From positions 62,001 through 126,000 of IMG/VR virus record IMGVR_UViG_3300040801_002079: DNA of 64,000 nt; one strand, written 5' to 3'. The position numbers were made by a program, and so were the translations under genes. The notes beneath the pieces are model-generated. The model saw nothing but the letters and a program-made list of their open reading frames with translations. It had not been told where the DNA came from and made no database searches. Each line of letters opens with the position of its first letter. Within the stretch, counting starts at the first letter, position 1. Positions 1,126 through 62,111 of this stretch are shown in pieces.

Positions 1126-2183
1126 TACAAATCTCCGTGGTTTGTACTATGAGTACATTATACATTACTCAGCGGATTTTTGCAACTCCCTTACCATGCG
1201 AAAGTTCTTATCTTCCATTTTGAGCAGGGCTTCACGATGATAAGAGGAACCGTCAATAGCACGTTGATGAACAAATGCTGCTGCTTCCAAATCTGTGTTG
1301 AATTCGGTATCCTCATCCCACCGCTGCAAGTCATACCATCCGTTAGGAATGTAGTGACTTCCCTCACAGCATGAAATGCACCATCCTTCTTTCCGTGCTT
1401 GGGTATCGTCAAAACCTTTCATTTTGTCTTTCCTGTGATAAAATAGGCAAGGGGTCCTTCAGCATGTAGATGCTTCAGGTCATCCTCATCAAGAGGAGTA
1501 AGAGGATTATAGCACAAATGGTGGTATTTTGCAACACACCACCGTGTGAAACGATAGCGTGATCCCACCCAGAATAGAACCCCACTAGTAATATAGTGGA
1601 TTTTTTGCAAGAATGTTATCATCTTCTTTGAACTCCTGTGCCCAGTCTTGTTCATCGGCTTCGATAACGTCATCCCACCCATGGAGGTGTGCATGAAGTT
1701 CTGCTTGTTTACGGATAGAATCCATGTCGAGATTGTCATCATCAATGTCAACAGTTTTCTTCTTGATGGTGGTTTCCATCTTGTAGTAAGTCATTTTCAT
1801 TTTTCTTTGTAGTCCCCTACAGAAATGTTTGCTCGTGGCGTGTGGTCCATGTCAACAATGTAATCAGCTAACCGTTTTGACATGTCTTTCAACTCAAACC
1901 GTGCAACGCGAAAATCACTTCGAAGATTTTCCAACACAACTTCAATGTCAGCAATCAGTGCGGCAGCATCCGGATTATTAGATGCGTAGGCTTGTACTTG
2001 ACATTCACCGACTCGGTGCCATATGGTAGATAACTCGTTGGTATAAACAAACTCAGGACCTGTTAAGTCCAAGTAGAGTTCAATCTCCAGAAGGAGGTAG
2101 CGCAGATTGACGGGCAACAGTGCTGCTGCTTTATCAATGGTTTCTTGTGGATAATCAATCATGTGATGACTATAGCACAGGTT

Positions 2184-2453
2184 TTATTTTTTATCAAGGT
2201 TTCCTAGACCGGAACCAGCAATTTTACCACCAATGCGTCTTACGACACGATCCACAACAGTTCCTTTGTTAAGGGCATTGACATCACCCAACACTTTATT
2301 GGCACCAAGAAGGAGTTCACGTAATGAATTGATACCAGATTTGGCATTTTTACGTTTACCCTTATGGGTCTTGGATTGATAAGGTGTTCTCATGGGTTTT
2401 GCCTTGTAAGGCTTTCTACCCGTTTTTGCTCTGTATGGAGTTCTCATGCTCAT
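2184..2453 (-). CDS. Small very basic late protein with repeated (M)RTPY motifs
   Basis: TATAAATA at 2459-2466, 5 nt before ATG 2453; Lys/Arg-rich; MRTPY occurs twice. Confidence 0.65.
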   Translation of the reverse strand: MSMRTPYRAKTGRKPYKAKPMRTPYQSKTHKGKRKNAKSGINSLRELLLGANKVLGDVNALNKGTVVDRVVRRIGGKIAGSGLGNLDKK

Positions 2454-3428
2454 GATACTATTTATACGCTGCAAGCAGTTCCTCTAAATTATCGACATCT
2501 ACTGTAGTGTCAAGTGGCTCATAATCCAGAACAAGTTCGTCAATGTACTCCTCATTCACATCTGGAATCTCTTTATACCATGAATCTCCGTGTCTGTGTT
2601 CCATGTCCAGAACGTTAACAACACGTTCCATGAACTGAAAGGCTTCTTCTTCAGTGGATGCACACCACTTGAAGATGGGATAAGGATCAGCGAAAATACC
2701 GCTGCTTTTGTAAAGTGTGAGAGTGACTAGGAACATTGCTCTTCCTTTAATTCGATGATACCCTTATTATACCATTCCAGAAGGAAAGTGTAAAGTTCGG
2801 GGGATGCGGGCACTGATTCCCATCCGGGTTCAAGGTTCATGAACCCCTTATAGTATGACTCTTTATCCTGTGTTACTTCATTGGTCTCACGGTTAATGTA
2901 AATTGGAATAATTGTACCATACCGACGATTTTCAATGATGGGATTGTTGAGCAGAATACAAAGCACTTCAGCTTCAAATCCTGCATAACGTCCCAGTGTT
3001 ACATCCCCACCTTTCTTCCATACACGAAGATTAAGATCGGGGCGACACCACTGCATATAGTTTGCAGCATATAGTTTCTGAAACTTAAACCCCTGCTTCT
3101 TCAGCTTGGAGTAATCACCATTAAAGCGAATGTATCGTTTCTTCATCATGGTAGCATCTATCGTGCTAACATGTGTGCATGGAGTGCACTGCACACGGGA
3201 TAAAAATAGGAGTTTTCCAAAACCGTGATGTAATCAGGTCCATCATCACCGTAACGAACGAGGTAATCATAACGTGAACCTTCACAAGTACGATACGCAT
3301 CCATGATGCAATTTTCACGCGGGTCCAAGAATGAACCAATGTACTTGCACTTGTTGCAATCATGGATGTAATGTGACATGTTCTTTCTCCGTGGATGATG
3401 GAGACATTATAACATAGTTAAAGGGTTA

Positions 3429-3542
3429 GAGCAAGATGGGTGTCGCACCCACATTTTCACTAACTATACTGGGAAACCTCATTATAAGGGTTGCAACCAT
3501 TCCCAGACGCTTCGTTGACTAGTATTGAAGCTTACATTGCTC
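3429..3542 (-). ncRNA. Candidate tRNA-like RNA (cloverleaf with enlarged loops)
   Basis: GAGCAA/UUGCUC closing stem, GCUUC/GAAGC arm, CUGGGAA/UUCCCAG arm, T-arm-like GUGGG-UGCGACA-CCCAU; no standard anticodon loop. Confidence 0.5.
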
Positions 3543-3545
3543 ATT

Positions 3546-3740
3546 GTGAGAGTAACACAGACCTCTCTATGCATTTTAGAATCAGGTAAACGACTGATCC
3601 ACTCTCAGGTGAATAAAAAGGGAAGTGAGGGAAGGGTAGATACCAACCTACCTTAGTTTTCTGATTCGGGTTCCCTGTATGCCTGTGTTCCTCATATGGA
3701 CCATCAAAGCAAGCAGTACAGTGGCATCCCCCACTTCCAA
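3546..3740 (-). ncRNA. Candidate structured RNA downstream of a sigma70 promoter
   Basis: ORF-free; GGAAGUGGGGGA/UUCCCUCACUUCC and UGAGAGU/ACUCUCA stems; promoter TTGACA-17-TATAAT at 3776-3748. Confidence 0.45.
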
Positions 3741-3747
3741 TAAATTC

Positions 3748-3776
3748 ATTATACTAAAATGATAATGGGTTGTCAA
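3748..3776 (-). promoter_or_regulatory. Consensus sigma70 promoter
   Basis: TTGACA (3776-3771), 17 nt spacer, TATAAT (3753-3748). Confidence 0.8.
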
Positions 3777-5373: not shown

Positions 5374-6226
5374 GTTGTTCTCCGTGGGTTCGTTCAGTTG
5401 ATAAGTACATTATACCAACTTACGGGGAAAAGTCAAGTCATTGCGGTATTATAAATCAGAATTGATCCAATCACTGTCATGGGAACAAACAATAATGCTC
5501 TCACCAATTTAACCCCAATTGATGCACGATCATCGTTTAGAATAAGGTCCACCACTGATATGAAAAACAGAATGGTGCTGGCGATAAGGTAGAATTTCAA
5601 CATTATTCACTATCCTCCAGATAACCGTCACAGTAGTTATAACCAATCACATCCTCAACCAGTCCTGCTCTAAACAACTTGAACTGGTAGTCCATGTAGT
5701 GGTAGTCTTTCCATCCCATGTAAATAACTGCAAGCAGCACTAAGATGATAAATTCAAGGATGCCTCTTTTCCAAACTTCTTTCGTGTGTAGTCCAAAACC
5801 CATTTTAACCCCATGCGGTAGATACTAAACTGGTAGAATGATACCATACCACAACTGTAACCAAATGTCAAGCACTAAAGAGTTCTGCTACCTTCTCCCG
5901 GCACTTGATGCGTTTCAACACTTCCTTTTTGGGAAGAAATTCAACATTAGGTTCATGGTATCCATCCCCATACGGAAGATGCAACAGGAATGAACGCACA
6001 CCTGAACCAACAGGACCTTCAACCATCATGTACTGTGCGTATCCGTCAGCAACGGGTTCCTGAAAGATTTTACCACTGTTCTTACCAGTGTACCCCTGTT
6101 CCTGTAACCATTCACGAATGGATTCACGGTGAAGTTCCTCGTCTTTCCCCCATTCCTCAAAAGTCTGATTAATGTAATCAGGCTCGGGAATGGTGGCTTC
6201 AAGTTCTTCGGGTAAGGAATAGATTT

Positions 6227-6742
6227 TCATGCTACACTCTCCATCATGTAATCCGCAGACACATGTGCTTGTGCGCGGCAGAAACCAAGATCATCATAAC
6301 CCCAACAGGAGTCGATGGGTTCTCCGTGCTCGTCAGTAATGATATAACCGTAAGCTTCACCACGAAGGTACTTGTCATAGGTATCCACTTCGACGGACAG
6401 ATGGGCTTTCACCTTCTCAATAAGTTCATCGGTAACCGTGGTCACACCATACTCTTTGCGAATGTCATCAAGGGACACGTAGATGTAACCCACCATTCCA
6501 GAATCCCATGGGCAACTGAACGGTTCCGTGCTCATGGTGATACCACTATGGTCGTACAAGTACAGGGGAAGATAGATGTAATCTTCTTCCGGTGGGGGCG
6601 CATCCTTGTCTCCAAGATCATAACGATTGTGGAGACAGAACATGGTCCCCAAGTTATCATCTTCGCGGGGGTTCATGGGTTCATCGTCGTAATACAGACT
6701 GATAACCATGTCGTGATATTCGTGGGTTTCAAAAGGTTCCAT
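6227..6742 (-). CDS. Conserved hypothetical protein (LPLYLYDHSG...WDSGxVGYIY family)
   Basis: Motif recalled from phage/ICE hypotheticals; early module upstream. Confidence 0.7.
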   Translation of the reverse strand: MEPFETHEYHDMVISLYYDDEPMNPREDDNLGTMFCLHNRYDLGDKDAPPPEEDYIYLPLYLYDHSGITMSTEPFSCPWDSGMVGYIYVSLDDIRKEYGVTTVTDELIEKVKAHLSVEVDTYDKYLRGEAYGYIITDEHGEPIDSCWGYDDLGFCRAQAHVSADYMMESVA

Positions 6743-6842
6743 CAAACTGTTCCGTGGTTTCAATGTAGGGATATTATAACAGATTGTAAGGAAGAAGTAA
6801 AGTGGTGGGCCGTGTAGGGATCGAACCTACAACCTACCGATT

Positions 6843-7612
6843 CACGTTTGTGTGCATTTCTACACTCCGTGGACTATATCACCACCCTCGTCATTAACGT
6901 TAGGGTGCGGGTCGCTCTAGCTGGTCATTAAGGGGACTTTACCCCTCCAGTAGTCTCTGCACCTTCCTAGAGTGTACTCTAGGCTTGGCTCAAGGTTTTC
7001 ATAGTAACCCATACTTTCTTGCCCATTTTCGTGCTCCATTGTCGCTGACATTATATTTCCTTCCTATGGCTAACCATGAAAGGTGATTCATGTCTTGCTT
7101 CAATTCGCCCTTAGTGGGCTTTGTTTTCCCTCTTTGCTGCTGGTATTTTAACTCTTTATACTTACCAGCACATTCTTTCGAACAGGTGTGCTTCTGCTTT
7201 GCCTGTAGAGTTTGAAAACAAATCTCACAGTATGTCGGTTCGGTTACCTTAGAGTTCCCTGAATTCAACCCGTTCCTTTCATAACTTTCGTGTATGAAGG
7301 CACCAGTATCAATCCAGTTATGTATTTTAACATGGTCTCCCCGACTAAGAACAATGAGATTCTCACTCCTGTTATTAGATCGGTTACAATCAAGATGATG
7401 AACAACTTCATTACTTTCTAGCTGTCTACCTAGATTGGATTCCACGACAAGAATGTGTTCGTAAACCCATCCCTTCCAGTTATCACAATCCATACTTGAT
7501 TGATAATCAGGTCTATACAACAACCTGTAACCATTTAAATACCGAACTGTCTTTTTACTTGTATCCATATGACTATTTATATCATATTCGAACCAAAGAT
7601 ACAAGTTTTTTG
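6843..7612 (-). mobile_element. Group I intron (IC3-like) in the tRNA anticodon loop, carrying an HNH gene
   Basis: Inserted after exon U, ends in G; P (GGGTTGAATTCAGGGAACTC), Q (AACCTTGAGCCAAG), R (GTGCAGAGACTA) and S (GATATAGTCC) elements present. Confidence 0.92.
6999..7568 (-). CDS. Intron-encoded HNH homing endonuclease with C-terminal Zn-finger and HTH
   Basis: YEHILV...EVVHHLDCNRSNN..ENL...H...H; CEIC..CSKEC; WLAIGRKYNVSDNGARKW; TATAAATA at 7574-7581. Confidence 0.9.
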   Translation of the reverse strand: MDTSKKTVRYLNGYRLLYRPDYQSSMDCDNWKGWVYEHILVVESNLGRQLESNEVVHHLDCNRSNNRSENLIVLSRGDHVKIHNWIDTGAFIHESYERNGLNSGNSKVTEPTYCEICFQTLQAKQKHTCSKECAGKYKELKYQQQRGKTKPTKGELKQDMNHLSWLAIGRKYNVSDNGARKWARKYGLL

Positions 7613-7902
7613 ATGAGTCGGTTGCTCTAACCAATTGAGCTAACGGCCCTTTACTTCAAAAGTAATTCTACCACAATGATGTTACTATTTCAACTTGGTA
7701 TTTGGTTTGACTCCACCACCCGTTCCGGTGCCACCACCAGTTCCATCGGCTTTATCATTCTTGGCTTTAACAACTCTCCAAGCAACAAATCCAACAAATA
7801 AAACAACAATTCCTGCTACTAGATATGTTTCCATGATTATATCCTCCTTTGAGGGTATTTATCCCCCGAATGATCGGGGGATTATCATGGTCCAGTGTTT
7901 GA

Positions 7903-8256
7903 TTAGGAAGTGGAGAAGGAGAGACCCATCTTGCGAACCTGTGCGTCGATGGCGGGTTCACTGCGCTTCATCTTCTTTGCAACTTCCGCACGGCTAAGAC
8001 CACCAAGAACAAGAGAAGCAATCTGCTTGTTCATTGCACCCGTATAGCGAACATACGAATTCTCAGCAGTGGAGGGGGAGCGAGTGGCTTTCTTGCGATC
8101 CCACTTGCGGCGAACCAACTCTTCCTTCAACTGGTAGACCAGTGCACGATCCGCATCAGATGCGAAACGCTCTACGTAGCGCTCTACCTGCTTCTCGGAG
8201 TTGACCAGTGCGGGGGCACGACCATCGGGAAAGATAATCATAAAACGTTTTTTCAT
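7903..8256 (-). CDS. Putative DNA-binding protein with C-terminal HTH
   Basis: GLSRAEVAKKMKRSEPAIDAQVRKMGL. Confidence 0.55.
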   Translation of the reverse strand: MKKRFMIIFPDGRAPALVNSEKQVERYVERFASDADRALVYQLKEELVRRKWDRKKATRSPSTAENSYVRYTGAMNKQIASLVLGGLSRAEVAKKMKRSEPAIDAQVRKMGLSFSTS

Positions 8257-8607
8257 GCTATTTACTCCGTGTAGTAAATGATTTGTGGTGTGCTGATTTC
8301 GGCCTGTGTTCCTAATCTCAGCGTGGGTATATACTAACAAAAGTTAGATGTTTTGTCAAGCTATGAAATGTAATTATCGGGGTCTAAACCCATCATTCCT
8401 CTGAGTTCACGAATGTGATATGCACCAACTGCAAGTTCAAACACATAAACAAGTTCTTCTTGAGTGAATTTACCCAAGTCAAGTTCAAACAATGTCCCAG
8501 CGTTACCAGAAACTTCCTGTATCCAGCGCTTCTGTTTCAATAAATCATCGTCTTTAAGAGCAGGAAGATACTTCTCTTCTAACCGTTTCTGCATTAATGA
8601 ACATGCG

Positions 8608-9513
8608 TCATTCATTGATAATTTCCTTGATTTTCCGCAGTTTATCGGCAGCAACCTGTTCGCTACCTTCCAAGTTGAAGTAGGCTGAGAGTGACCCATA
8701 GCGGGCTTCCAAGCAACTCATCAACAGAGGTTTTAGTTTATCATACTGTGGCAGCAGGGGCAAGGTGCTGTTAATATAAAGCGTATCCAGATCGGCTTGA
8801 CGCTTCTCAAACCATGATTCCAACTGCTCCAGAGTCCACTCACCGTTACGAACATCCTTCAGGAGTTCACGATTGGCTTCCAGATCAAGATCACCCGTTG
8901 AGAGCACCATTTCACACTGTTGAACCAGTCTTACGACATGATAGGCAAATTTGACATCATATCCAAACTTTGCAATAGTGTCTTTACGTTTACCAACAGG
9001 GTCTTTAGTGCGAAGCTTACGCAACTGGCTGTATGCATACCCTGACAGTTTCTTCTGGATACCACGATGAAGGAACAATCTACGGTTCTCACGCATAATG
9101 TCCCCAACCTCGTCAGAATGGACTACACACCGTTCAGGGACGAACAGGGAGTCGATCATGTTAGGATTGTTATCCGCACACAGCTTGAAGTAGTTGACGA
9201 TATTGTAAAGGGCAATGTCATATTCCTTACCCGTGTCCTCGTCAATGATGTGATGCTTTTGAACAACATCAATCACTTGGGGCTGAGGACCGAAACCGGG
9301 AATGTGACCAGCAGCATGAGGGAACACCATGTCAATGGGTGGAACAAATGCACCGTAGACATCGACATCAGAACCCATGTTAGAGACACCATAGGCAAAT
9401 GATCCCATGATGACCTCGTAACACGTTTCTTTAACAAACGGCTTCCACGGGGGCAGGAGTTCTTTCTTCTCCAGCTTCCGTACAATGCTTCCTCTGTCTT
9501 TTCCTGATGACAT
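8608..9513 (-). CDS. Pol-beta superfamily nucleotidyltransferase (RlaP/Nuc-transf type)
   Basis: GSFAYG....SDVDVYG, NPN, GYDVKFAYHVVRL and L.DVRNG motifs. Confidence 0.88.
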   Translation of the reverse strand: MSSGKDRGSIVRKLEKKELLPPWKPFVKETCYEVIMGSFAYGVSNMGSDVDVYGAFVPPIDMVFPHAAGHIPGFGPQPQVIDVVQKHHIIDEDTGKEYDIALYNIVNYFKLCADNNPNMIDSLFVPERCVVHSDEVGDIMRENRRLFLHRGIQKKLSGYAYSQLRKLRTKDPVGKRKDTIAKFGYDVKFAYHVVRLVQQCEMVLSTGDLDLEANRELLKDVRNGEWTLEQLESWFEKRQADLDTLYINSTLPLLPQYDKLKPLLMSCLEARYGSLSAYFNLEGSEQVAADKLRKIKEIINE

Positions 9514-13851: not shown

Positions 13852-14952
13852 TTACACATCGTCATTATCCTCCACAAACTGCTTGAAGTTCTTTACGAGC
13901 ATTTCCTCGTAATCGACAGTACCACCGGTAAACAAACGCATGGCACAATTGAATTCCATTCGGTTCAAGTCATTCTGTCCCTTGATTGCATAGGACTTGC
14001 GATCTAAATGCTTGTTTTCCTTATGGAAGCTTTCAACAGAGTGTACCATAGAATTCAATGCATGTCCAGCAATTCGCTCCATTTCCTCAATTCGATTCAG
14101 AGTGTATGCATCATCATGGAACAATGAACGCAGATCATCGGTAGCACCACGAACAGCAACCTCAAACAATCGACGGTTCGACTGGATTGAATCCTTTGCA
14201 CGATGTAGACTAAAGTATTCCTCGGTCTTGATCTTGATACGTTGACCACTTCCCAGACCCATAATGAACCCTTCAATACCCTTCATGGTGGGAATTTCGG
14301 CAGCAAATGACACAGAATCATCTACCATATGGGTATGATCCTCCACCATGTACTCATGTCCGAAGATTTCATAGAGAAGATCATAGTCCCAATAACTCAA
14401 GTCGGAGTTATTACGGACAGCAAGCACACGCAGTTCACACTCCTGATAAGGGAGCACGATACGATTCTTTGGAGAAGTATACTCCATGATGACAGTAGAA
14501 TCTTCAGATGCAACACGCTGCACCATGTCACGGAAGTATTCATCCTTGTTAAGAAGGTTGGTTGCTTCCAATGCTTGATCGGATGCGATAGCAGTCTTGG
14601 ACTTCAGGCACAGCATGTCCTCATGAAAGAAGGTGCTGATTAAAGAACCATCACGCTTTTCATGAACAAACCGGACATCGGATAAGTCCAAGTTCATGGT
14701 CATTGGATTCTCGTTCAAGTTAAAGAACTTCTCTAACGGTGCTGAAACAAGTTCAACGTCGGCACCGTCAACACGAAACATGTGACCACGACACTCAAGG
14801 GCATCTGGCTCAAGGAAATCAGTGTAAGATGCTAACCGGTAAGTGAACACACGATAAAGCACTCCGTTGATGTTGTGGTCAACGAAATAGAATGCTTCAT
14901 TGACATCAACCAATCGCATTAGGTTGTTATAAAGTTCTTGTACTCGGTTCAT
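13852..14952 (-). CDS. rnlA: RNA ligase 1 (T4 RnlA family)
   Basis: LECRG, PLEKFFNLNEN, motif I KRDGSL, EYTSP.NRIV, EGF, KIK...Y..LH. Confidence 0.92.
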   Translation of the reverse strand: MNRVQELYNNLMRLVDVNEAFYFVDHNINGVLYRVFTYRLASYTDFLEPDALECRGHMFRVDGADVELVSAPLEKFFNLNENPMTMNLDLSDVRFVHEKRDGSLISTFFHEDMLCLKSKTAIASDQALEATNLLNKDEYFRDMVQRVASEDSTVIMEYTSPKNRIVLPYQECELRVLAVRNNSDLSYWDYDLLYEIFGHEYMVEDHTHMVDDSVSFAAEIPTMKGIEGFIMGLGSGQRIKIKTEEYFSLHRAKDSIQSNRRLFEVAVRGATDDLRSLFHDDAYTLNRIEEMERIAGHALNSMVHSVESFHKENKHLDRKSYAIKGQNDLNRMEFNCAMRLFTGGTVDYEEMLVKNFKQFVEDNDDV

Positions 14953-14954
14953 TG

Positions 14955-15131
14955 TTATACGTCTTTTATCTGATGCTTCCCACAACGTTCACACGTTCTC
15001 TCATGTGCTAGCACTTTATCAATCACCACTTTCTCCGGTTCACCACACCATGCATAATGTATGGTCTTTTTGAACAACTGGGGGGCAGAAAACTTTCCCC
15101 ACTTGTGGATTCCAAATGTACAAAGGTTCAT
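14955..15131 (-). CDS. Small Cys/His protein (C..GIHKW...C.RCG)
   Basis: 58 aa, hand-translated, below the ORF track cutoff; early-type promoter upstream. Confidence 0.55.
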   Translation of the reverse strand: MNLCTFGIHKWGKFSAPQLFKKTIHYAWCGEPEKVVIDKVLAHERTCERCGKHQIKDV

Positions 15132-21384: not shown

Positions 21385-21476
21385 GTTGCAGTGGCAGAGT
21401 CTGGTTATGCGCTGGATTGCAAATCCAGTTAGTGCTCGAAAGGGCCACGCGGGTTCAAATCCCGCCTGCAACTCCA
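21385..21476 (+). tRNA. tRNA-Cys(GCA) with an atypical long variable arm
   Basis: GTTGCAG/CTGCAAC acceptor, U73, CCA; CTGGA-TTGCAAA-TCCAG anticodon arm; about 20 nt variable region. Confidence 0.88.
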
Positions 21477-38059: not shown

Positions 38060-39097
38060 ATGGTAGAAGAAGCCTACGTCTATCTGTGGAGAGATTCTGT
38101 AAACAAGAAATTCTATCTTGGGTATCATAAAGGATCACCTGATGATAACTATGCCCATTCATCATCGGTTATGGAATCCTTTAAAATGAATTCTGTCCCT
38201 AATGGGTATAAACGTAGAATACTTGCGTTTGGATCAAGGGAAGAGATGTTAGCACTTGAGGAAACTCTGCTTAAGAATAGAAAGGAACGAGGTCGGTGGC
38301 ATAAGTATCATAATATGAAGACATGCTCATTTCCTTATCTCTGGGATGATCCTGAGTATCGTGAGAAGATGAAAGCGTTATGGGATGATCCTGAGTTTTA
38401 TAAGATGAGGTCTGAAGAAACATCCGCTAGACTTAAAGAAATGTGGAAGGACCCTGAGTATCAGAAAATGCAGTCGGAACTGATGTCAGCTAGAAATAAA
38501 GAGTGGTGGGATGACCCTGAGTATCGTGAGAAGATGGCAAAAATGATGTCGATTCGAAGCAAGGAGTGGTGGAATGACCCTGAGTATCGTGAGAAGATAT
38601 GTGCCGCATTGAAAGCGGCATGGGATGATCCTGAGTATCGTGAGAAAATGGCTGAGATTATGTCAGTTCGTGTTAAAGAACTATGGAAAGACCCTGAATA
38701 TCGTGAGAAGATGGCTGAGATTATGTCAGTTCGAAGCAAGGAGTGGTGGAATGACCCTGAGTACAGACAGATGAAATCTGAAAGTATGTCGATCCTACAC
38801 AAAGAACTATGGAAAGACCCTGAATATCAGAAGAAAATGTCTAAGAAGCGAAAGGCTATGTGGAAAAACCCCGAGTATCTAAAAAAACAAGCTGAAAATA
38901 TGGCAGTTCGAAGTAAAGAACTATGGAAAGACCCTGAATATCGTGAGAATATTTCTAAAAAAATGAAAAAAAAATGGGAAGACCCTGAGTATCGTAAAAA
39001 GATGCGGGCTATTTGTACGGTGTGCGGGCACGAATCTCAAAAATCAGTAATAACACGATACCATAACGATAACTGTAAGTTTAAGAACAAACAATAA
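38060..39097 (+). CDS. GIY-YIG (Seg-like) endonuclease with 12 tandem W.DPEY repeats
   Basis: YVYLW......KFYLGYH.G...D.Y..SS N-terminal domain; repeat array; C-terminal CTVCG...RYHNDNCK. Confidence 0.85.
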   Translation: MVEEAYVYLWRDSVNKKFYLGYHKGSPDDNYAHSSSVMESFKMNSVPNGYKRRILAFGSREEMLALEETLLKNRKERGRWHKYHNMKTCSFPYLWDDPEYREKMKALWDDPEFYKMRSEETSARLKEMWKDPEYQKMQSELMSARNKEWWDDPEYREKMAKMMSIRSKEWWNDPEYREKICAALKAAWDDPEYREKMAEIMSVRVKELWKDPEYREKMAEIMSVRSKEWWNDPEYRQMKSESMSILHKELWKDPEYQKKMSKKRKAMWKNPEYLKKQAENMAVRSKELWKDPEYRENISKKMKKKWEDPEYRKKMRAICTVCGHESQKSVITRYHNDNCKFKNKQ

Positions 39098-49602: not shown

Positions 49603-51892
49603 AGATGGTTACATTGTTTTTAGCACAAACGGTGAGTTCTTTGACACCGAATTTGATTGTGTATGTGATGAAGTTGAAGACCTTCGTGAAGATGGTGAGA
49701 TTGTAAGTATATGGGTTGGTGAACTTGATGAAGTTAATCACCGGGATTACATTAATGCTCACTATATTGTCGAACAAATGGCTGATGCGGCATATGATGA
49801 TTTAGATGACTTTACAGAAGGTTATCTGGATGATGTAACCATGAAGCAACTTGACGAATTGGAAGAAGTTATCTCCAATTGGTTCGATGAGAATGTTTCA
49901 AAACCATCGTTTTTCAGGGTTCGAAACATGAGAGAGGTTAGTTTTAAAGTGGGTCAACGGGATAAGGCATGGAAGGCAATACATGACGGATAAAATAAGA
50001 CCACTATCTGAATATCTTGATGAAAGTTGGGAAGACCCGCATAAGCGTAAGTATTTGAAAGAGGCGGTGTTTGACTATAATCGCAGACTTCGTGAAGAAA
50101 ATGAGGCTCTTATTGCTTTTATAGATGAATATATGGGAGTTCCCGATGGGACCAGACTGTGGCCCATGTTTGAACATGCTAATAGAGTCGTTAAGCGATT
50201 TGAAAAAATGGACCAAAGAATATCCCAACTGGAAGAGGTTATAGAAATTCTACGCAACTGTGACCCCGTTACTATACAAATGCCCGTTGGTGGTAACGTT
50301 CCATTTGTACCATATAGTAAAATTAGAAGATTACTGGAGAAAGTTTAATGACTAAAGAAAAGGGCAATAACAACCCCTTCAAGTCTGCAATAGAAAAAGC
50401 TAAAAAGGATTTAGAAGGATTCGATGAAGCCATGGAGATTGTTAAAGAGTTGAGAAACCCAACAAAGAATAGGCCGTTTATTCACAAAGAGCGGGTACAG
50501 AAAGGACCCTATGAGGTTGTGGAAGAAGAAACCACGTATGATGAAATTGATGAAATTTTTGGTACGGATGGTAACAATCTTGTAAGTTCAATGATGCAAA
50601 GAATTCGTGATTACGAAGATGTAATTAAAACTTTAACCGATGAAAATAAAAGATTAAAGAATTCTAATAAAATTTCGGTCATTTCTGAGGACATTTCCAG
50701 TCTAAGAGATTGGATTTTAGGGGAATCCAAAAGGCTAAATGATGAAATTAGGAATATATCTAAAGTTGTCAAGGATGTTAAAAAGTGCAAGGTTTATGTA
50801 CTAGATTCAAGAGGTAATATGATTGAAGAGAGTGATGATACACCGTTATCTGCAATTAGATATATACAAAGAGATGATGTATTAAGAGTTTTTAAAAACA
50901 GGAGGCTGGTTGATAAAAATGGCTAATAAAACTTTAGAAGTTTGGTACAGATATGATGATGACTATGATGGAAATGTGCTCTGCACAAAGTATGAAGTAT
51001 TAAAGCATACCCCGAAAGGTGTTTGGTTAAAGTTTGGAAACAATGATAAATTTGTACTAAAAGGTGCTAGGAAGCGTTTTGCATGTCCAGATAAGGATTC
51101 AGCATTAGAGTCTTTTATAGCTAGGAAATATTCACAGCGCAAAATTGTTAGAAGACAGGTTGATAGGGTGGAAAAGGCAATACTTTCTGCACAAACAATT
51201 CAGGCTGGATTAAAACCACATAGATTTACACAAGTATATACCATAGGGAGCTTTACGCATGACTATCCATAACAATAATGAATTAGACTGGGCTAGATTA
51301 TTAAAAGAACAAGAAGAAGAAACCAAACGATATAAAGCTTTATATGAAACACGAGAAAAGCAATTGGAATGTGCTCATAAGCGAATTCGTGACATAAAGC
51401 GATGTCAGAGATATAGTATTGATAAAAACGGCAATCCAGTTGAATGGAGATTCGGAAAGTGGATCATTCATGAAGAAATGGTAAAAGCTGCGGCCCTTCC
51501 CCATGAAGATGACGAGAGGTAAAAACAATGTTTCCTGATACATATTGTGCATTCTGTCATAATAGAACAGCAACCGGATGTGAACATTGCAACCCCTCTG
51601 TTCATGGACGCATTGACTTTTTTCCCGATCCCCCCGATTTGGAAAGAGAAATTGAAGAGATTAAAAAGCGGTTAGATAAGCTGGAGAATAAAGATGTTTA
51701 GTTGGGTGTTATTACTGGCAAGTCTTATATTATTAGCTGGTGTAATGTTAATGGCTGGGTATGACTTTAAAAAGCAAACCGTGCCCGTACTTATAGGGGC
51801 GACACTTCTTTGGGTATTGATTACATTGGCAAATTTTATATCTCCAACCACATAGCTTTCTATAAATACGGATAATAATCCGAGGATTTGCT

Positions 51893-53212
51893 ATGAAAAT
51901 TAATGAAGTCATGGGCGGTGAAAAACGAGCCGCGATAAAAAAGGGTACGAAAAGACCCATGGGACTTTCCCATAAAATCAATAAACAGTCTAAGAAACTC
52001 CAAAATAAAGCTGCTAGACGCAAAAGCAAGCGTGAATTGGAATTGTCTGAGTCTATAAATGTAATTCTATTTGAAAAACTAAAATTACTCCATGATAAGA
52101 AAAATGGAGTTCTCGCTGTGGCTTCCGACGAAACTGACCCCAAAAAGGCAAGCCGAGAAACGTATCGCAATAAAGATGCTCTTAAGTCTGCTGGTTTTAA
52201 ATGGTCTGGTGGCAACTGGACTATTAGTGATTCTGAGTTTGAAAAAGCCAAGTCTACATTAACCACAATTAACAAAACAGAATACCTGATTAATAAACTG
52301 GAAGATGTTCAGGAATTTATCGGTGATGCTACCAGTGACCCTAAGAAGGGGAGATTAACCGATATGATTCAGGGTTATATTGATGACTTGGCAAGTGCTA
52401 CAGATGAAGCCGCTGCTGCCGAAGAAATACGTAAGTATTTGGATTTCTTCTCTAATTTTTATCAGTACAGTTTCTTCAATAAGATTTTAATCTATATTCA
52501 GAACCCGGATGCAACTCAGGTTGCTAGCTATAAAAACTGGAGGAAAAAGCATCGTCAGGTTAAGAAGGGCGCTAAAGGTATGCAGATTCTCGTACCTATA
52601 TTCCCAAAGGGACGCAATCCAAAATATGATGATGTGGATGAGGATGATAAAGCTCAGCCAGTAAGATTCATTGTTGGCAGCGTGTTTGATATTAAGGACA
52701 CGGAAGCTATAGATGAAAGAGGTGAGGCTCCTGAAGAACCAGAGTGGTGGGGTGACAATACTCCAAGTGAAACGGCTAAAGACCTATTCAATTTGGTTGT
52801 CAAGGCAGCAGAAGCTGAAGGCATTGATATAACCTCTGATGATGCGAAAGGGGGAGAGAAGGGCTACAGTTCTGGTGGACATATTAACATCACATCGAAT
52901 GTAGAAGGTGTGGGTGAAGTTTCCACGATGGTTCATGAGTTTGCACACGAATTAATGCACTGGAAGGATCGCTCCAAGTTTTATGTTGGTGATGAGGCCG
53001 CTGGAAACAGGAAACTTAAAGAACTACAAGCCGAGAGTGTGTCATATGTTGTCCTGAAGCATTATAAGCTTCCAGTTGAGCATCACACTAAATATCTTGC
53101 TTTGTGGAGAGCAACCGGTGAAAAAATCAAGAACAACATTGAAACAATTTCAAAAGTTGCTCATTACATTATTAAAAAGATTGACGCTCAAGCAGAAAAG
53201 AAATCTAAATAA
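51893..53212 (+). CDS. ArdC-like ssDNA-binding domain plus zincin metallopeptidase (anti-restriction/polyvalent type)
   Basis: YSFFNKILIYIQNPDATQVASY..W....RQVKKGAKG..IL.P, VFDI..TE, HEFAHELMH, ELQAESVSY; TATAAATA at 51861. Confidence 0.88.
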   Translation: MKINEVMGGEKRAAIKKGTKRPMGLSHKINKQSKKLQNKAARRKSKRELELSESINVILFEKLKLLHDKKNGVLAVASDETDPKKASRETYRNKDALKSAGFKWSGGNWTISDSEFEKAKSTLTTINKTEYLINKLEDVQEFIGDATSDPKKGRLTDMIQGYIDDLASATDEAAAAEEIRKYLDFFSNFYQYSFFNKILIYIQNPDATQVASYKNWRKKHRQVKKGAKGMQILVPIFPKGRNPKYDDVDEDDKAQPVRFIVGSVFDIKDTEAIDERGEAPEEPEWWGDNTPSETAKDLFNLVVKAAEAEGIDITSDDAKGGEKGYSSGGHINITSNVEGVGEVSTMVHEFAHELMHWKDRSKFYVGDEAAGNRKLKELQAESVSYVVLKHYKLPVEHHTKYLALWRATGEKIKNNIETISKVAHYIIKKIDAQAEKKSK

Positions 53213-61837: not shown

Positions 61838-62111
61838 ATAAATACAAGTAGTAAATTTGAAAATAACGCTGGCTAGGGAATTCTCTAGCCAGTGCTATTA
61901 TGGGAGAACTGAAATGTTCAAAAAACTTAAATTAAATCATTACGTTAGCGATTATTTTTGGGAAGATGTGAAGAACCTATCCATTACTTTGCTAATTGTC
62001 ATCGTTATTGGTGGGGCTTGCACCCTAGCAATTTATCATCCGTACATTATTGATTGACACAGATCAATTTATTTGGTAAAGTATTAAAACTTTCACTCAA
62101 TAGGTAAGACT

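Follow-up and report, generated by a model that had tools for sequence, protein, structure and literature searches.

A predicted HNH homing-endonuclease gene runs through the ribozyme core of a group I intron in a phage tRNA(CAU) gene

Group I introns with endonuclease genes that touch the core

Reviews state that the ORFs of group I introns sit in peripheral loops and touch the ribozyme core only at their ends (PMC3984707, PMC3073962). In core creep, an ORF terminus is extended to the next stop or start codon so that coding sequence overlaps core helices and the added residues are tails (Edgell, Chalamcharla and Belfort 2011, PMC3073962), and exon-fused ORFs of mitochondrial group I introns also overlap core helices (PMC8393795). 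In the phage T4 td intron, the ORF of I-TevI overlaps ribozyme structure, translation interferes with splicing, and a late promoter lies inside a hairpin that hides the translation start (PMC2988022; also I-TevII and I-TevIII). Introns in the anticodon loop are known from the Azoarcus tRNA-Ile gene, which leaves a 3´ exon of 40 nt (PMC13168695), and from the Synechocystis tRNA-fMet gene, whose mobile intron encodes I-SspI, an endonuclease that targets the tRNA gene (Bonocora and Shub 2001, cited in PMC3984707).

Here, we analyzed a window of 64,000 nt (positions 62,001 to 126,000 of the IMG/VR record IMGVR_UViG_3300040801_002079), in which a phage tRNA(CAU) gene is split by a group I intron. 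The intron interrupts what is probably the same type of gene, at the same place in the anticodon loop, as the Azoarcus intron and also leaves a 40-nt 3´ exon. In contrast to the Azoarcus intron, which is 205 nt long and has no ORF, it spans 770 nt with a 189-aa ORF, has an L1 of about 290 nt and an L5 of about 230 nt, contains an extra hairpin between P7 and P3´, and has a protein-coding 5´ core. I-SspI is probably a LAGLIDADG enzyme housed in one loop, whereas the enzyme described here is an HNH protein spread over two loops with core in between, and the hosts are phages and candidate-phyla bacteria. Compared with the td intron, which shares the modular order of nuclease, linker with zinc finger and HTH, a whole domain lies beyond the core, about 65 nt of core are dual-coding, and the host gene is a tRNA rather than an mRNA. 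In contrast to core creep, the core lies between two folded, conserved domains (as predicted), and this arrangement is fixed across a large family. Our literature searches, which cover open-access text only, found no report of an HNH endonuclease in a tRNA intron or of a tRNA group I intron in a phage.

The split tRNA(CAU) gene and its intron

The locus lies on the minus strand of the window and consists of the following features.

7613–7649 (-): tRNA(CAU) 5´ exon, with the acceptor 5´ strand, D arm, anticodon stem 5´ strand and C-U-C-A-U.
6843–7612 (-): group I intron, 770 nt; the 5´ splice site follows U7613 and the terminal G (omega-G) is at 6843.
6803–6842 (-): tRNA(CAU) 3´ exon, with AA of the anticodon loop, the anticodon stem 3´ strand, variable loop, T arm, acceptor 3´ strand and encoded CCA.
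6999–7568 (-): predicted HNH homing-endonuclease ORF, 189 aa plus stop; HNH domain about aa 9–88, core-encoded linker about aa 88–110, 4-Cys zinc ribbon aa 114–133, HTH aa 150–189.
7557–7606 (-): leader hairpin pairing the AUG and codons 2–5 with intron nt +7 to +16; the inner stem is AUAUGAU/GUCAUAU.
7586–7594 (-): conserved, T-loop-like leader motif GGUUCGAAU (family consensus GGUUCRARU).
7574–7581 (-): TATAAATA, a T4-late-type or extended -10-like promoter motif; the A of the ATG is the 6th base after it.

The 5´ exon ends in CTCAT and the 3´ exon starts with AA and ends in CCA. When joined, the exons form a 77-nt cloverleaf that ARAGORN calls tRNA(cat). The intron matches the full Rfam Intron_gpI model (RF00028, model positions 1–253) at 7320–6850 with 62.2 bits (gathering score 50, E 2.3e-13). 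U7613 can pair with a G of the guide sequence GGUG, and a 3-bp P9.0 just before omega-G covaries in relatives (104/111 paired). The ATG of the ORF is at 7568, 44 nt into the intron, and the TGA stop is at 7001–6999; residues R9–P20 are conserved, which identifies ATG 7568 as the start rather than that of the shorter gene call P0001. The product contains Pfam HNH_3 (PF13392; I-HmuI-like) at aa 36–80 (E 2.3e-11; 43.6 bits against 24.8) with invariant H57, H58, N66, N70, H79 and H83, and matches phrog_15471 over its full length. In the AlphaFold model, both domains have pLDDT values above 90 and the linker has values of 54–56. The top PDB fold match is I-HmuI (1u3e), although this match is weak (E 0.17, probability 0.77, TM 0.29), and a profile search of PDB sequences gave nothing significant. 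Megablast of the locus against 50,697 phage records found nothing, and blastn found only the conserved 3´ core in crAss-like and Flavobacterium phage introns.

The elements of the ribozyme are arranged around and within the ORF as follows.

7301–7304 (-): internal guide sequence GGUG (P1 3´ strand), pairing with C-A-U of the exon plus intron C+1, inside codons Gly89–Ala90.
7275–7300 (-): P2 hairpin with a GAAA tetraloop, both strands coding (AFIHESYER).
7266–7272 (-): P3 5´ strand CGGGUUG (codons N-G-L), 7/7 pairs with 6914–6908.
7257–7265 (-): J3/4 AAU plus P4 5´ strand UCAGGG (codons N-S-G).
7242–7256 (-): J4/5 AAC, the P5 5´ half of an 11-nt GAAA-tetraloop receptor (UCUAAG) and the P5a 5´ strand GUAACC.
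7010–7241 (-): L5 insert, coding the zinc-ribbon and HTH domain.
6990–7009 (-): P5a 3´ strand GGUUAC, the receptor 3´ half UAUGA (containing the UGA stop), J5/4 AAA and the P4 3´ strand CCUUGA (6995–6990), which begins 3 nt after the stop.
6951–6989 (-): P6/P6a hairpin, J6/7 and the P7 5´ strand (..GCAGAGACUA).
6921–6950 (-): extra hairpin between P7 and P3´ (the P7.1 position), conserved in the family.
6908–6914 (-): P3 3´ strand CGACCCG, downstream of the ORF.
6844–6907 (-): P8 (receptor-like CCUAA..), P7 3´ strand UAGUC, P9.0, P9 with a GAAA loop, and ACAAACGU before omega-G.

The 5´ strands of P1, P2, P3, J3/4, P4, J4/5, P5 and P5a (7304–7242) all lie in frame inside the ORF, with the HNH domain in L1 and the zinc-ribbon/HTH domain in L5. 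The roughly 65 nt between them are read both as ribozyme core and as a flexible linker of 21–23 residues. The sequence-only reading had proposed that the element CGGGTTGAATTCAGGGAACTC (7272–7252; ..NGLNSGNS..) carries P3/P4 in frame and that the endonuclease spans two peripheral loops with core sequence as its linker. Every item that it listed is present in the sequence, and its central reading holds, although the dual-coding stretch also includes the guide sequence, the whole P2 hairpin, the P5 tetraloop receptor and P5a. It had also described the arrangement as an extreme form of core creep; however, core creep as defined cannot by itself place a folded DNA-binding domain beyond the core. 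The read-through tails in some relatives (..LSQA..EGAETSG..) do fit core creep. The layout of a short P1 between CAU|C and GGUG, GAAA loops on P2 and P9, and receptor motifs in P5 and P8 appears to fit the probable layout of the Azoarcus intron, apart from the extra hairpin after P7. The Rfam alignment of the P2 region is poor. P2 and the guide sequence were assigned by comparison with relatives and with the probable layout of the Azoarcus intron.

Dual coding in the core across the intron family

To test whether the in-ORF strands are the core strands, we searched the region upstream of P4´ for alternative partners. The segment 7272–7257 is the only site with 13/13 complementarity to P3´ plus P4´; the next best scores 10/13, and the 44-nt leader holds nothing usable. 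Leader UGGUUCG is 6/7 complementary to the P3 3´ strand, but it stays constant while P3´ varies in relatives. The same layout recurs in dozens of uncultured phages and bacteria. The 59 split tRNA(CAU) loci from phages and candidate-phyla bacteria are cut at CTCAT|..G|AA, and in 54 of the 59 the intron ends in G. Rfam scores of 55–93 bits were obtained at the same relative position in 18 listed loci with HNH relatives (16 distinct), in each of which the hit starts about 230 nt inside the ORF and ends about 150 nt after it.

Across 39 distinct introns, P3 is 98.2% paired with 2–5 pair types per position, P4 is 99.6% paired with compensatory changes, and the first P5 receptor pair occurs as C-G, U-A, A-U and G-C. 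Together, P3, P4 and P5 are 98.8% paired, against 80.0 ± 1.1% when partners are shuffled (maximum 84.4% in 2000 shuffles). P6, P8, P9 and P9.0 also covary in the alignments, with compensatory changes in P6a. RNAalifold on an ungapped alignment of the P2 region gave only a weak consensus because the hairpins sit in registers one base apart; folded one by one, all 33 distinct family sequences form a 7–10 bp GNRA-capped hairpin (mean z -3.7). NGUG sits at a fixed distance in 33/33 distinct sequences although the amino acids differ (GA, GG, SV, CG). Synonymous sites in the core-coding codons are frozen: codon identity is 1.00 at G89, 0.91 at E94, 1.00 at S103, 0.99 at G104 and 0.99 at S106, whereas other Gly and Ser columns score 0.2–0.35.

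The L5 insert appears as an insert in the Rfam alignment, and an ORF-less tRNA(CAU) intron on the same contig as an HNH-bearing one (L087, 3440–3762) has the same core with a 30-nt L1 and a GAAA L5. A further relative, L206, lacks only the L5 insert. Free-standing homologues, such as phiKZ gp296, lack the NGxNSGKxK motif or carry a decayed copy, and there the Gly codon is no longer fixed as GGU. As with I-HmuI and I-TslI and free-standing enzymes such as T4 SegB in the tRNA cluster (PMC2330249) and, apparently, T3 gene 5.3 (Bonocora and Shub 2009), intronic and free-standing homologues sit at or next to the same target genes: free-standing copies sit inside phage tRNA arrays, and some abut intact tRNA(CAU) genes. 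They appear in part to be escaped intron genes that keep the intron leader and a fossil ribozyme-coded linker, but the protein tree was too poorly resolved to root or to fix the direction of switches between intronic and free-standing forms, and the origin of the arrangement is not settled.

Splicing, expression and alternative readings

Taken together, these data support with high confidence a group I intron, presumably mobile and self-splicing, in a phage tRNA(CAU) gene, probably tRNA-Ile2. We infer that the pre-tRNA folds, splices with guanosine and releases a 77-nt tRNA, and that the protein nicks or cuts intron-less tRNA(CAU) genes of co-infecting relatives, after which repair copies the intron in. 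Metatranscriptome contigs match intron positions 6942–7113 and 7205–7394 exactly, and none match 3 kb of flanking genes. However, no ligated-exon junction was seen among the assembled contigs examined; the only contig joining the two exon regions (6834/7630) is a different tRNA from another organism, with 24 foreign bases (anticodon arm CUU) and 209 nt of unrelated flank. The long-range P1 has only 4 bp and would have to close a loop of about 290 nt.

The competition between translation and splicing is inferred from geometry: a ribosome crossing 7304–7242 must melt P1 to P5, so one RNA molecule could not both splice and be translated, and the phage probably separates the two jobs. On the pre-tRNA, the AUG would be locked in the leader hairpin (-15 kcal/mol, z -2.86). 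A TATAAATA promoter inside that hairpin would give a transcript that starts at the A of the AUG, lacks the 5´ exon and acts only as mRNA. The 8-mer occurs eleven times in the window against 3.5 expected, and the motif and its spacing are invariant in the relatives L229, L230 and L231. The window ORF has no Shine-Dalgarno sequence, so its expression depends on an unproven leaderless start.

It remains possible, although less likely, that the endonuclease is translated from the pre-tRNA or the excised intron and that TATAAATA is conserved as RNA, since the motif lies in the loop and stem of the leader hairpin and other family members have a Shine-Dalgarno sequence after a leader hairpin. The threefold enrichment of the 8-mer, the lack of a Shine-Dalgarno sequence in the window, the precedent of the T4 intron endonucleases (PMC2988022), and the placement of the A of the ATG at exactly the 6th base after the motif in four relatives, while the 5 bases in between vary, argue against this reading.

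An elongator tRNA-Met in place of tRNA-Ile2 is likewise doubtful but is not excluded, as ARAGORN labels any CAU anticodon as Met. The tRNA is not an initiator, because the 1:72 pair is G-C and the anticodon stem lacks the three G-C pairs. Pairs 3:70, 4:69 and 5:68 are G-C, C-G and C-G, which are the pairs that E. coli and Burkholderia TilS use as identity elements (PMC11947777), and the Azoarcus intron lies in the anticodon loop of tRNA-Ile (PMC13168695).

A local P1 just after the 5´ splice site, which would place the HNH domain between P1 and P2, is improbable, although such a helix could compete with the long-range P1 or replace it. Many relatives can pair CUCAU|CUGAACC with GGUUCAAAUGAG or GGUUCAAGUGAG (family pattern GGUUC-R-A-R-U), and the window can pair exon UCAU with leader AUGA. 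In that helix, however, the splice-site U pairs with A in the window and most relatives instead of the near-universal G, and the exon-complementary tail is not conserved. In addition, the N of the NGUG directly 5´ of P2 covaries with intron +1 (U-A in L087 and A-U in L218, another relative), and ORF-less relatives use exactly this GGUG. Conservation of the linker motif (GA...NGxNSGKSK) for protein reasons alone, with a dead ribozyme or other strands in use, is contradicted, despite amino-acid conservation in many homologues, by synonymous sites frozen only in this stretch, covariation with non-coding partners, loss or decay of the motif in free-standing homologues, the low AlphaFold confidence of the segment and the absence of another P3/P4 partner.

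More tentatively, these introns may represent a widespread, previously undescribed family in which the inter-domain linker of the endonuclease is obligatorily written in ribozyme core. This would be the longest conserved stretch of protein and catalytic-RNA dual coding known in a group I intron, and free-standing HNH genes in phage tRNA arrays, possibly including phiKZ gp296, would be escaped descendants that still carry a fossil of the ribozyme in their linker.

These tRNA(CAU) genes are missed by tRNA finders, so phage and candidate-phyla tRNA sets look incomplete (see PMC8172020). The family provides a natural data set for how RNA-structure and protein constraints are reconciled, with frozen synonymous sites next to covarying helices, a clean system to measure the conflict between translation and splicing and its resolution, and a probable record of endonuclease genes moving between intron-borne and free-standing life next to their target. 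About 65 nt of the core must satisfy ribozyme folding and a reading frame at once, and they have done so across a large, diverged family.

Organization of the split tRNA gene and its intron

The HNH protein is encoded on IMG/VR contig IMGVR_UViG_3300040801_002079 (316,801 bp), a jumbo phage from a microbial mat. The window also encodes rIIA and rIIB, an RNA ligase, a nucleotidyltransferase and three intact tRNAs. The nucleotidyltransferase (phrog_388; 8608-9513, minus strand) and the RNA ligase (phrog_562; 13852-14985, minus strand) lie close to the tRNA genes, and together they may form a tRNA repair or maturation module. The tRNA-Cys(GCA) (21385-21476, plus strand) is 92 nt long with an insertion of about 17 nt in the variable region, which is unusual for tRNA-Cys. 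In addition, a 345-aa ORF (38060-39097, plus strand) shows a weak match to a homing-endonuclease PHROG (phrog_314) and a stronger match to phrog_22215, and may be a second mobile-element gene.

On the minus strand, the two halves of a tRNA are separated by 770 nt that end in G. The 5´ half ends in CTCAT, while the 3´ half begins with AA and ends in CCA, and the joined halves form a 77-nt cloverleaf with anticodon CAU. The group I intron model of Rfam matches 7320-6850 at 62.2 bits (cut-off 50, E 2.3e-13). The only long ORF starts 44 nt into the intron, carries Pfam HNH_3 at aa 36-80 and matches phrog_15471 over its full length. The string CGGGTTGAATTCAGGGAACTC is located in frame within the ORF, whereas its P3 partner lies downstream and the P4 3´ strand starts 3 nt after the stop. 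The sequence-only reading, which had described an HNH ORF threaded through the core of a 770-nt intron next to the CAT anticodon, is correct in each descriptive statement.

To refine the anatomy, we compared the window with contig L087 (Bacteroidales MAG contig JAKSKN010000004.1), in which three group I introns lie within 1.8 kb of a tRNA array (1989-3762). Two tRNA(CAU) paralogues on this contig are split at the same site, one by an HNH-bearing intron and one by a 249-nt ORF-less intron; a third intron lies at 1989-2195. The ORF-less copy shows the basic plan, in which CAU|C pairs with GGUG, GGUG is followed directly by a P2 hairpin with a GAAA loop, and then come P3, J3/4 (AAU), P4, AAA and a 3-bp P5 capped by GAAA. 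In the window the same elements run from 7304 to 7242, and the features of the locus (all minus strand) are as follows.

7649-7613, tRNA 5´ half
7568, ATG of the HNH ORF
7304-7301, guide sequence GGUG
7300-7275, P2 (CCUUCAUACAC-GAAA-GUUAUGAAAGG)
7272-7252, in-frame string CGGGTTGAATTCAGGGAACTC
7272-7266, P3 5´ strand
7265-7263, J3/4
7262-7257, P4 5´ strand
7256-7254, J4/5
7253-7248, UCUAAG
7247-7242, GUAACC
7009-6990, the partners GGUUAC, UAUGA, AAA and CCUUGA
7001-6999, TGA stop of the HNH ORF
6914-6908, P3 partner CGACCCG
6842-6803, tRNA 3´ half

UCUAAG with UAUGA is a variant of the 11-nt GAAA-tetraloop receptor, and the UGA stop is part of this receptor. P9 carries a GAAA loop. The translated stretch is TGAFIHESYERNGLNSGNSKVT. 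So the HNH domain is coded in the P1 loop, about 290 nt between the splice site and the guide sequence, and the zinc-ribbon/HTH domain is coded in the P5 loop, about 230 nt; everything between is ribozyme.

Conservation of the ribozyme core within the ORF

To determine whether the in-ORF core is real, we first examined the relatives of the protein, of which there are 136 at E <= 0.001. In 18 loci with full-length relatives (16 distinct), the Rfam hit (55-93 bits) starts about 230 nt inside the ORF and ends about 150 nt after it. ARAGORN with introns allowed, together with manual placement of the splice sites, gave 59 split tRNA(CAU) loci, all cut at CTCAT|...G|AA. One phage contig (L018) carries a tRNA-Leu(UAA) with a 212-nt group I intron of the classical cyanobacterial type (3349-3644), as well as an HNH-bearing split tRNA(CAU) (2400-3300) that was missed by both ARAGORN and Rfam. 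Phage-encoded tmRNA genes lie next to the tRNA arrays that hold the HNH introns or HNH genes on L003, L007 and L010 (at about 1592-2162) and on L025 (3273-3668).

The helices covary. In 39 distinct introns, P3 is 98.2% paired with 2-5 pair types per position, and P4 is 99.6% paired with up to 4 types. The first receptor pair occurs as C-G, U-A, A-U and G-C, and P5a, which closes the L5 insert, is 78% paired with 5-6 types. When partners are shuffled among sequences, the pairing of P3+P4+P5 drops from 98.8% to 80.0 +/- 1.1%, with a maximum of 84.4% in 2000 shuffles. P2, both strands of which are coding, is a 7-10 bp hairpin in all 33 distinct sequences with a mean z-score of -3.7; its loop is GNRA in 32 of them, 29 being GAAA, and the GAA of the loop is the conserved Glu codon. 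GUG of the guide sequence is kept even where the encoded residues differ (Gly-Ala, Gly-Gly, Ser-Val, Cys-Gly), and the base before it covaries with intron +1: C-G in most, U-A in L087 and A-U in L218, another relative. Synonymous sites are frozen only in the core-coding stretch, as revealed by codon identity among sequence pairs that share the same amino acid. Moreover, 7272-7257 is the only site upstream of P4´ that is 13/13 complementary to P3´ plus P4´, and therefore no alternative P3/P4 outside the ORF was found.

Table. Codon identity among sequence pairs sharing the same amino acid.
G89: 1.00
E94: 0.91
S103: 1.00
G104: 0.99
S106: 0.99
Other Gly and Ser columns: 0.2-0.35

Several relatives serve as natural controls. 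L206 (153-785), a close relative of the window intron, keeps L1, the HNH domain and an intact-looking core but has lost the whole L5 insert, that is, the zinc-ribbon/HTH domain; it is probably a decaying endonuclease in a still-splicing intron. Free-standing relatives, including phiKZ gp296, phage BRkr and the loci L017, L023, L026, L037 and L038, sit between intact tRNA genes. They have no ribozyme, and their linkers are shorter and unrelated. In clades nested among the intron forms, the free-standing linker is a decayed copy (GAP...), in which the Gly codon has drifted to GGA or GGT followed by other bases. Several of these genes abut an intact tRNA(CAU) and keep the intron-type leader. Although the protein tree is poorly resolved, its well-supported branches force at least six switches between intron-borne and free-standing states.

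Predicted protein structure and expression of the endonuclease

The AlphaFold model, generated with 30 homologues, has a mean pLDDT of 87. Both domains score above 90, whereas residues 91-110 score 54-56 and residues 99-103 fall below 50. The best PDB fold match is I-HmuI, although the match is weak. The four invariant cysteines form a CxxC...CSxxC ribbon, and the C-terminus gives HTH-type fold hits. The core-coded part therefore behaves as a flexible tether, which is the usual design of modular phage homing endonucleases.

In the window, the leader is predicted to fold so that the AUG and codons 2-5 are paired (-15 kcal/mol, z -2.86). The motif TATAAATA (7581-7574, minus strand) lies inside that hairpin. 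This 8-mer occurs 11 times in the window (for example at 51861-51868, plus strand, 25 nt before the ORF at 51893) against 3.5 expected, and no shuffle of 100 reached 11; this threefold enrichment suggests that the phage uses T4-type late promoters. In the three closest relatives with DNA (79, 71 and 65% protein identity), TATAAAT is invariant and the A of the ATG is always the 6th base after the 8-mer, while the bases in between vary. This matches the T4 design, in which a late promoter inside an inhibitory hairpin frees the endonuclease start only on late transcripts, and in which untimely translation lowers splicing (PMC2988022). Here the start would be leaderless, and this mode of expression is inferred. 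A T-loop-like motif, GGUUCRARU, also lies about 18 nt after the 5´ splice site (7586-7594, minus strand) and is found upstream of the HNH genes of the relatives L156, L174 and L184. It is conserved across the whole intron family and survives in apparent free-standing descendants, but no covarying partner was found.

Three small metatranscriptomes from the source sample hold contigs identical to 6942-7113 and 7205-7394 and nothing from 5500-6700 or 7780-9500, which fits an abundant intron or precursor RNA. The single contig that appeared to join the exons is a different tRNA from another organism, so splicing is not shown. This 287-nt RNA contig carries a tRNA with anticodon arm CUU (Lys), the first 20 nt of which match the phage tRNA(CAU) at 20/20 (7630-7649) and the last 32 nt at 30/32 (6803-6834). 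Its flank contains GCGATCG-like repeats, and it may be a host tRNA and so a hint to the host.

tRNA identity and comparison with known intron ORFs

The interrupted tRNA is not an initiator. Its 3:70, 4:69 and 5:68 pairs (G-C, C-G, C-G) are those used by TilS enzymes (PMC11947777), and the Azoarcus intron sits in the anticodon loop of tRNA-Ile with a 40-nt 3´ exon, as here (PMC13168695). Ile2 is likely but unproven.

Reviews place bacterial intron ORFs in loops with overlaps only at ORF ends, and explain such overlaps by core creep, the extension of an ORF terminus (PMC3984707, PMC3073962, PMC8393795). Some relatives here do creep further, as their tails (..PTLSQA..EGAETSGEV) translate P4´, P6 and P7. 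However, a folded domain on the far side of the core needs another origin, such as fusion of two loop-borne modules or a rearrangement (the sequence-only reading had inferred an extreme form of core creep). No description of this family was found in full-text searches of open-access literature, which is not proof of absence. The arrangement noticed in the window is confirmed, the interpretation that the ORF is threaded through the ribozyme core is supported, and it extends to a family-wide, dual-coding arrangement.
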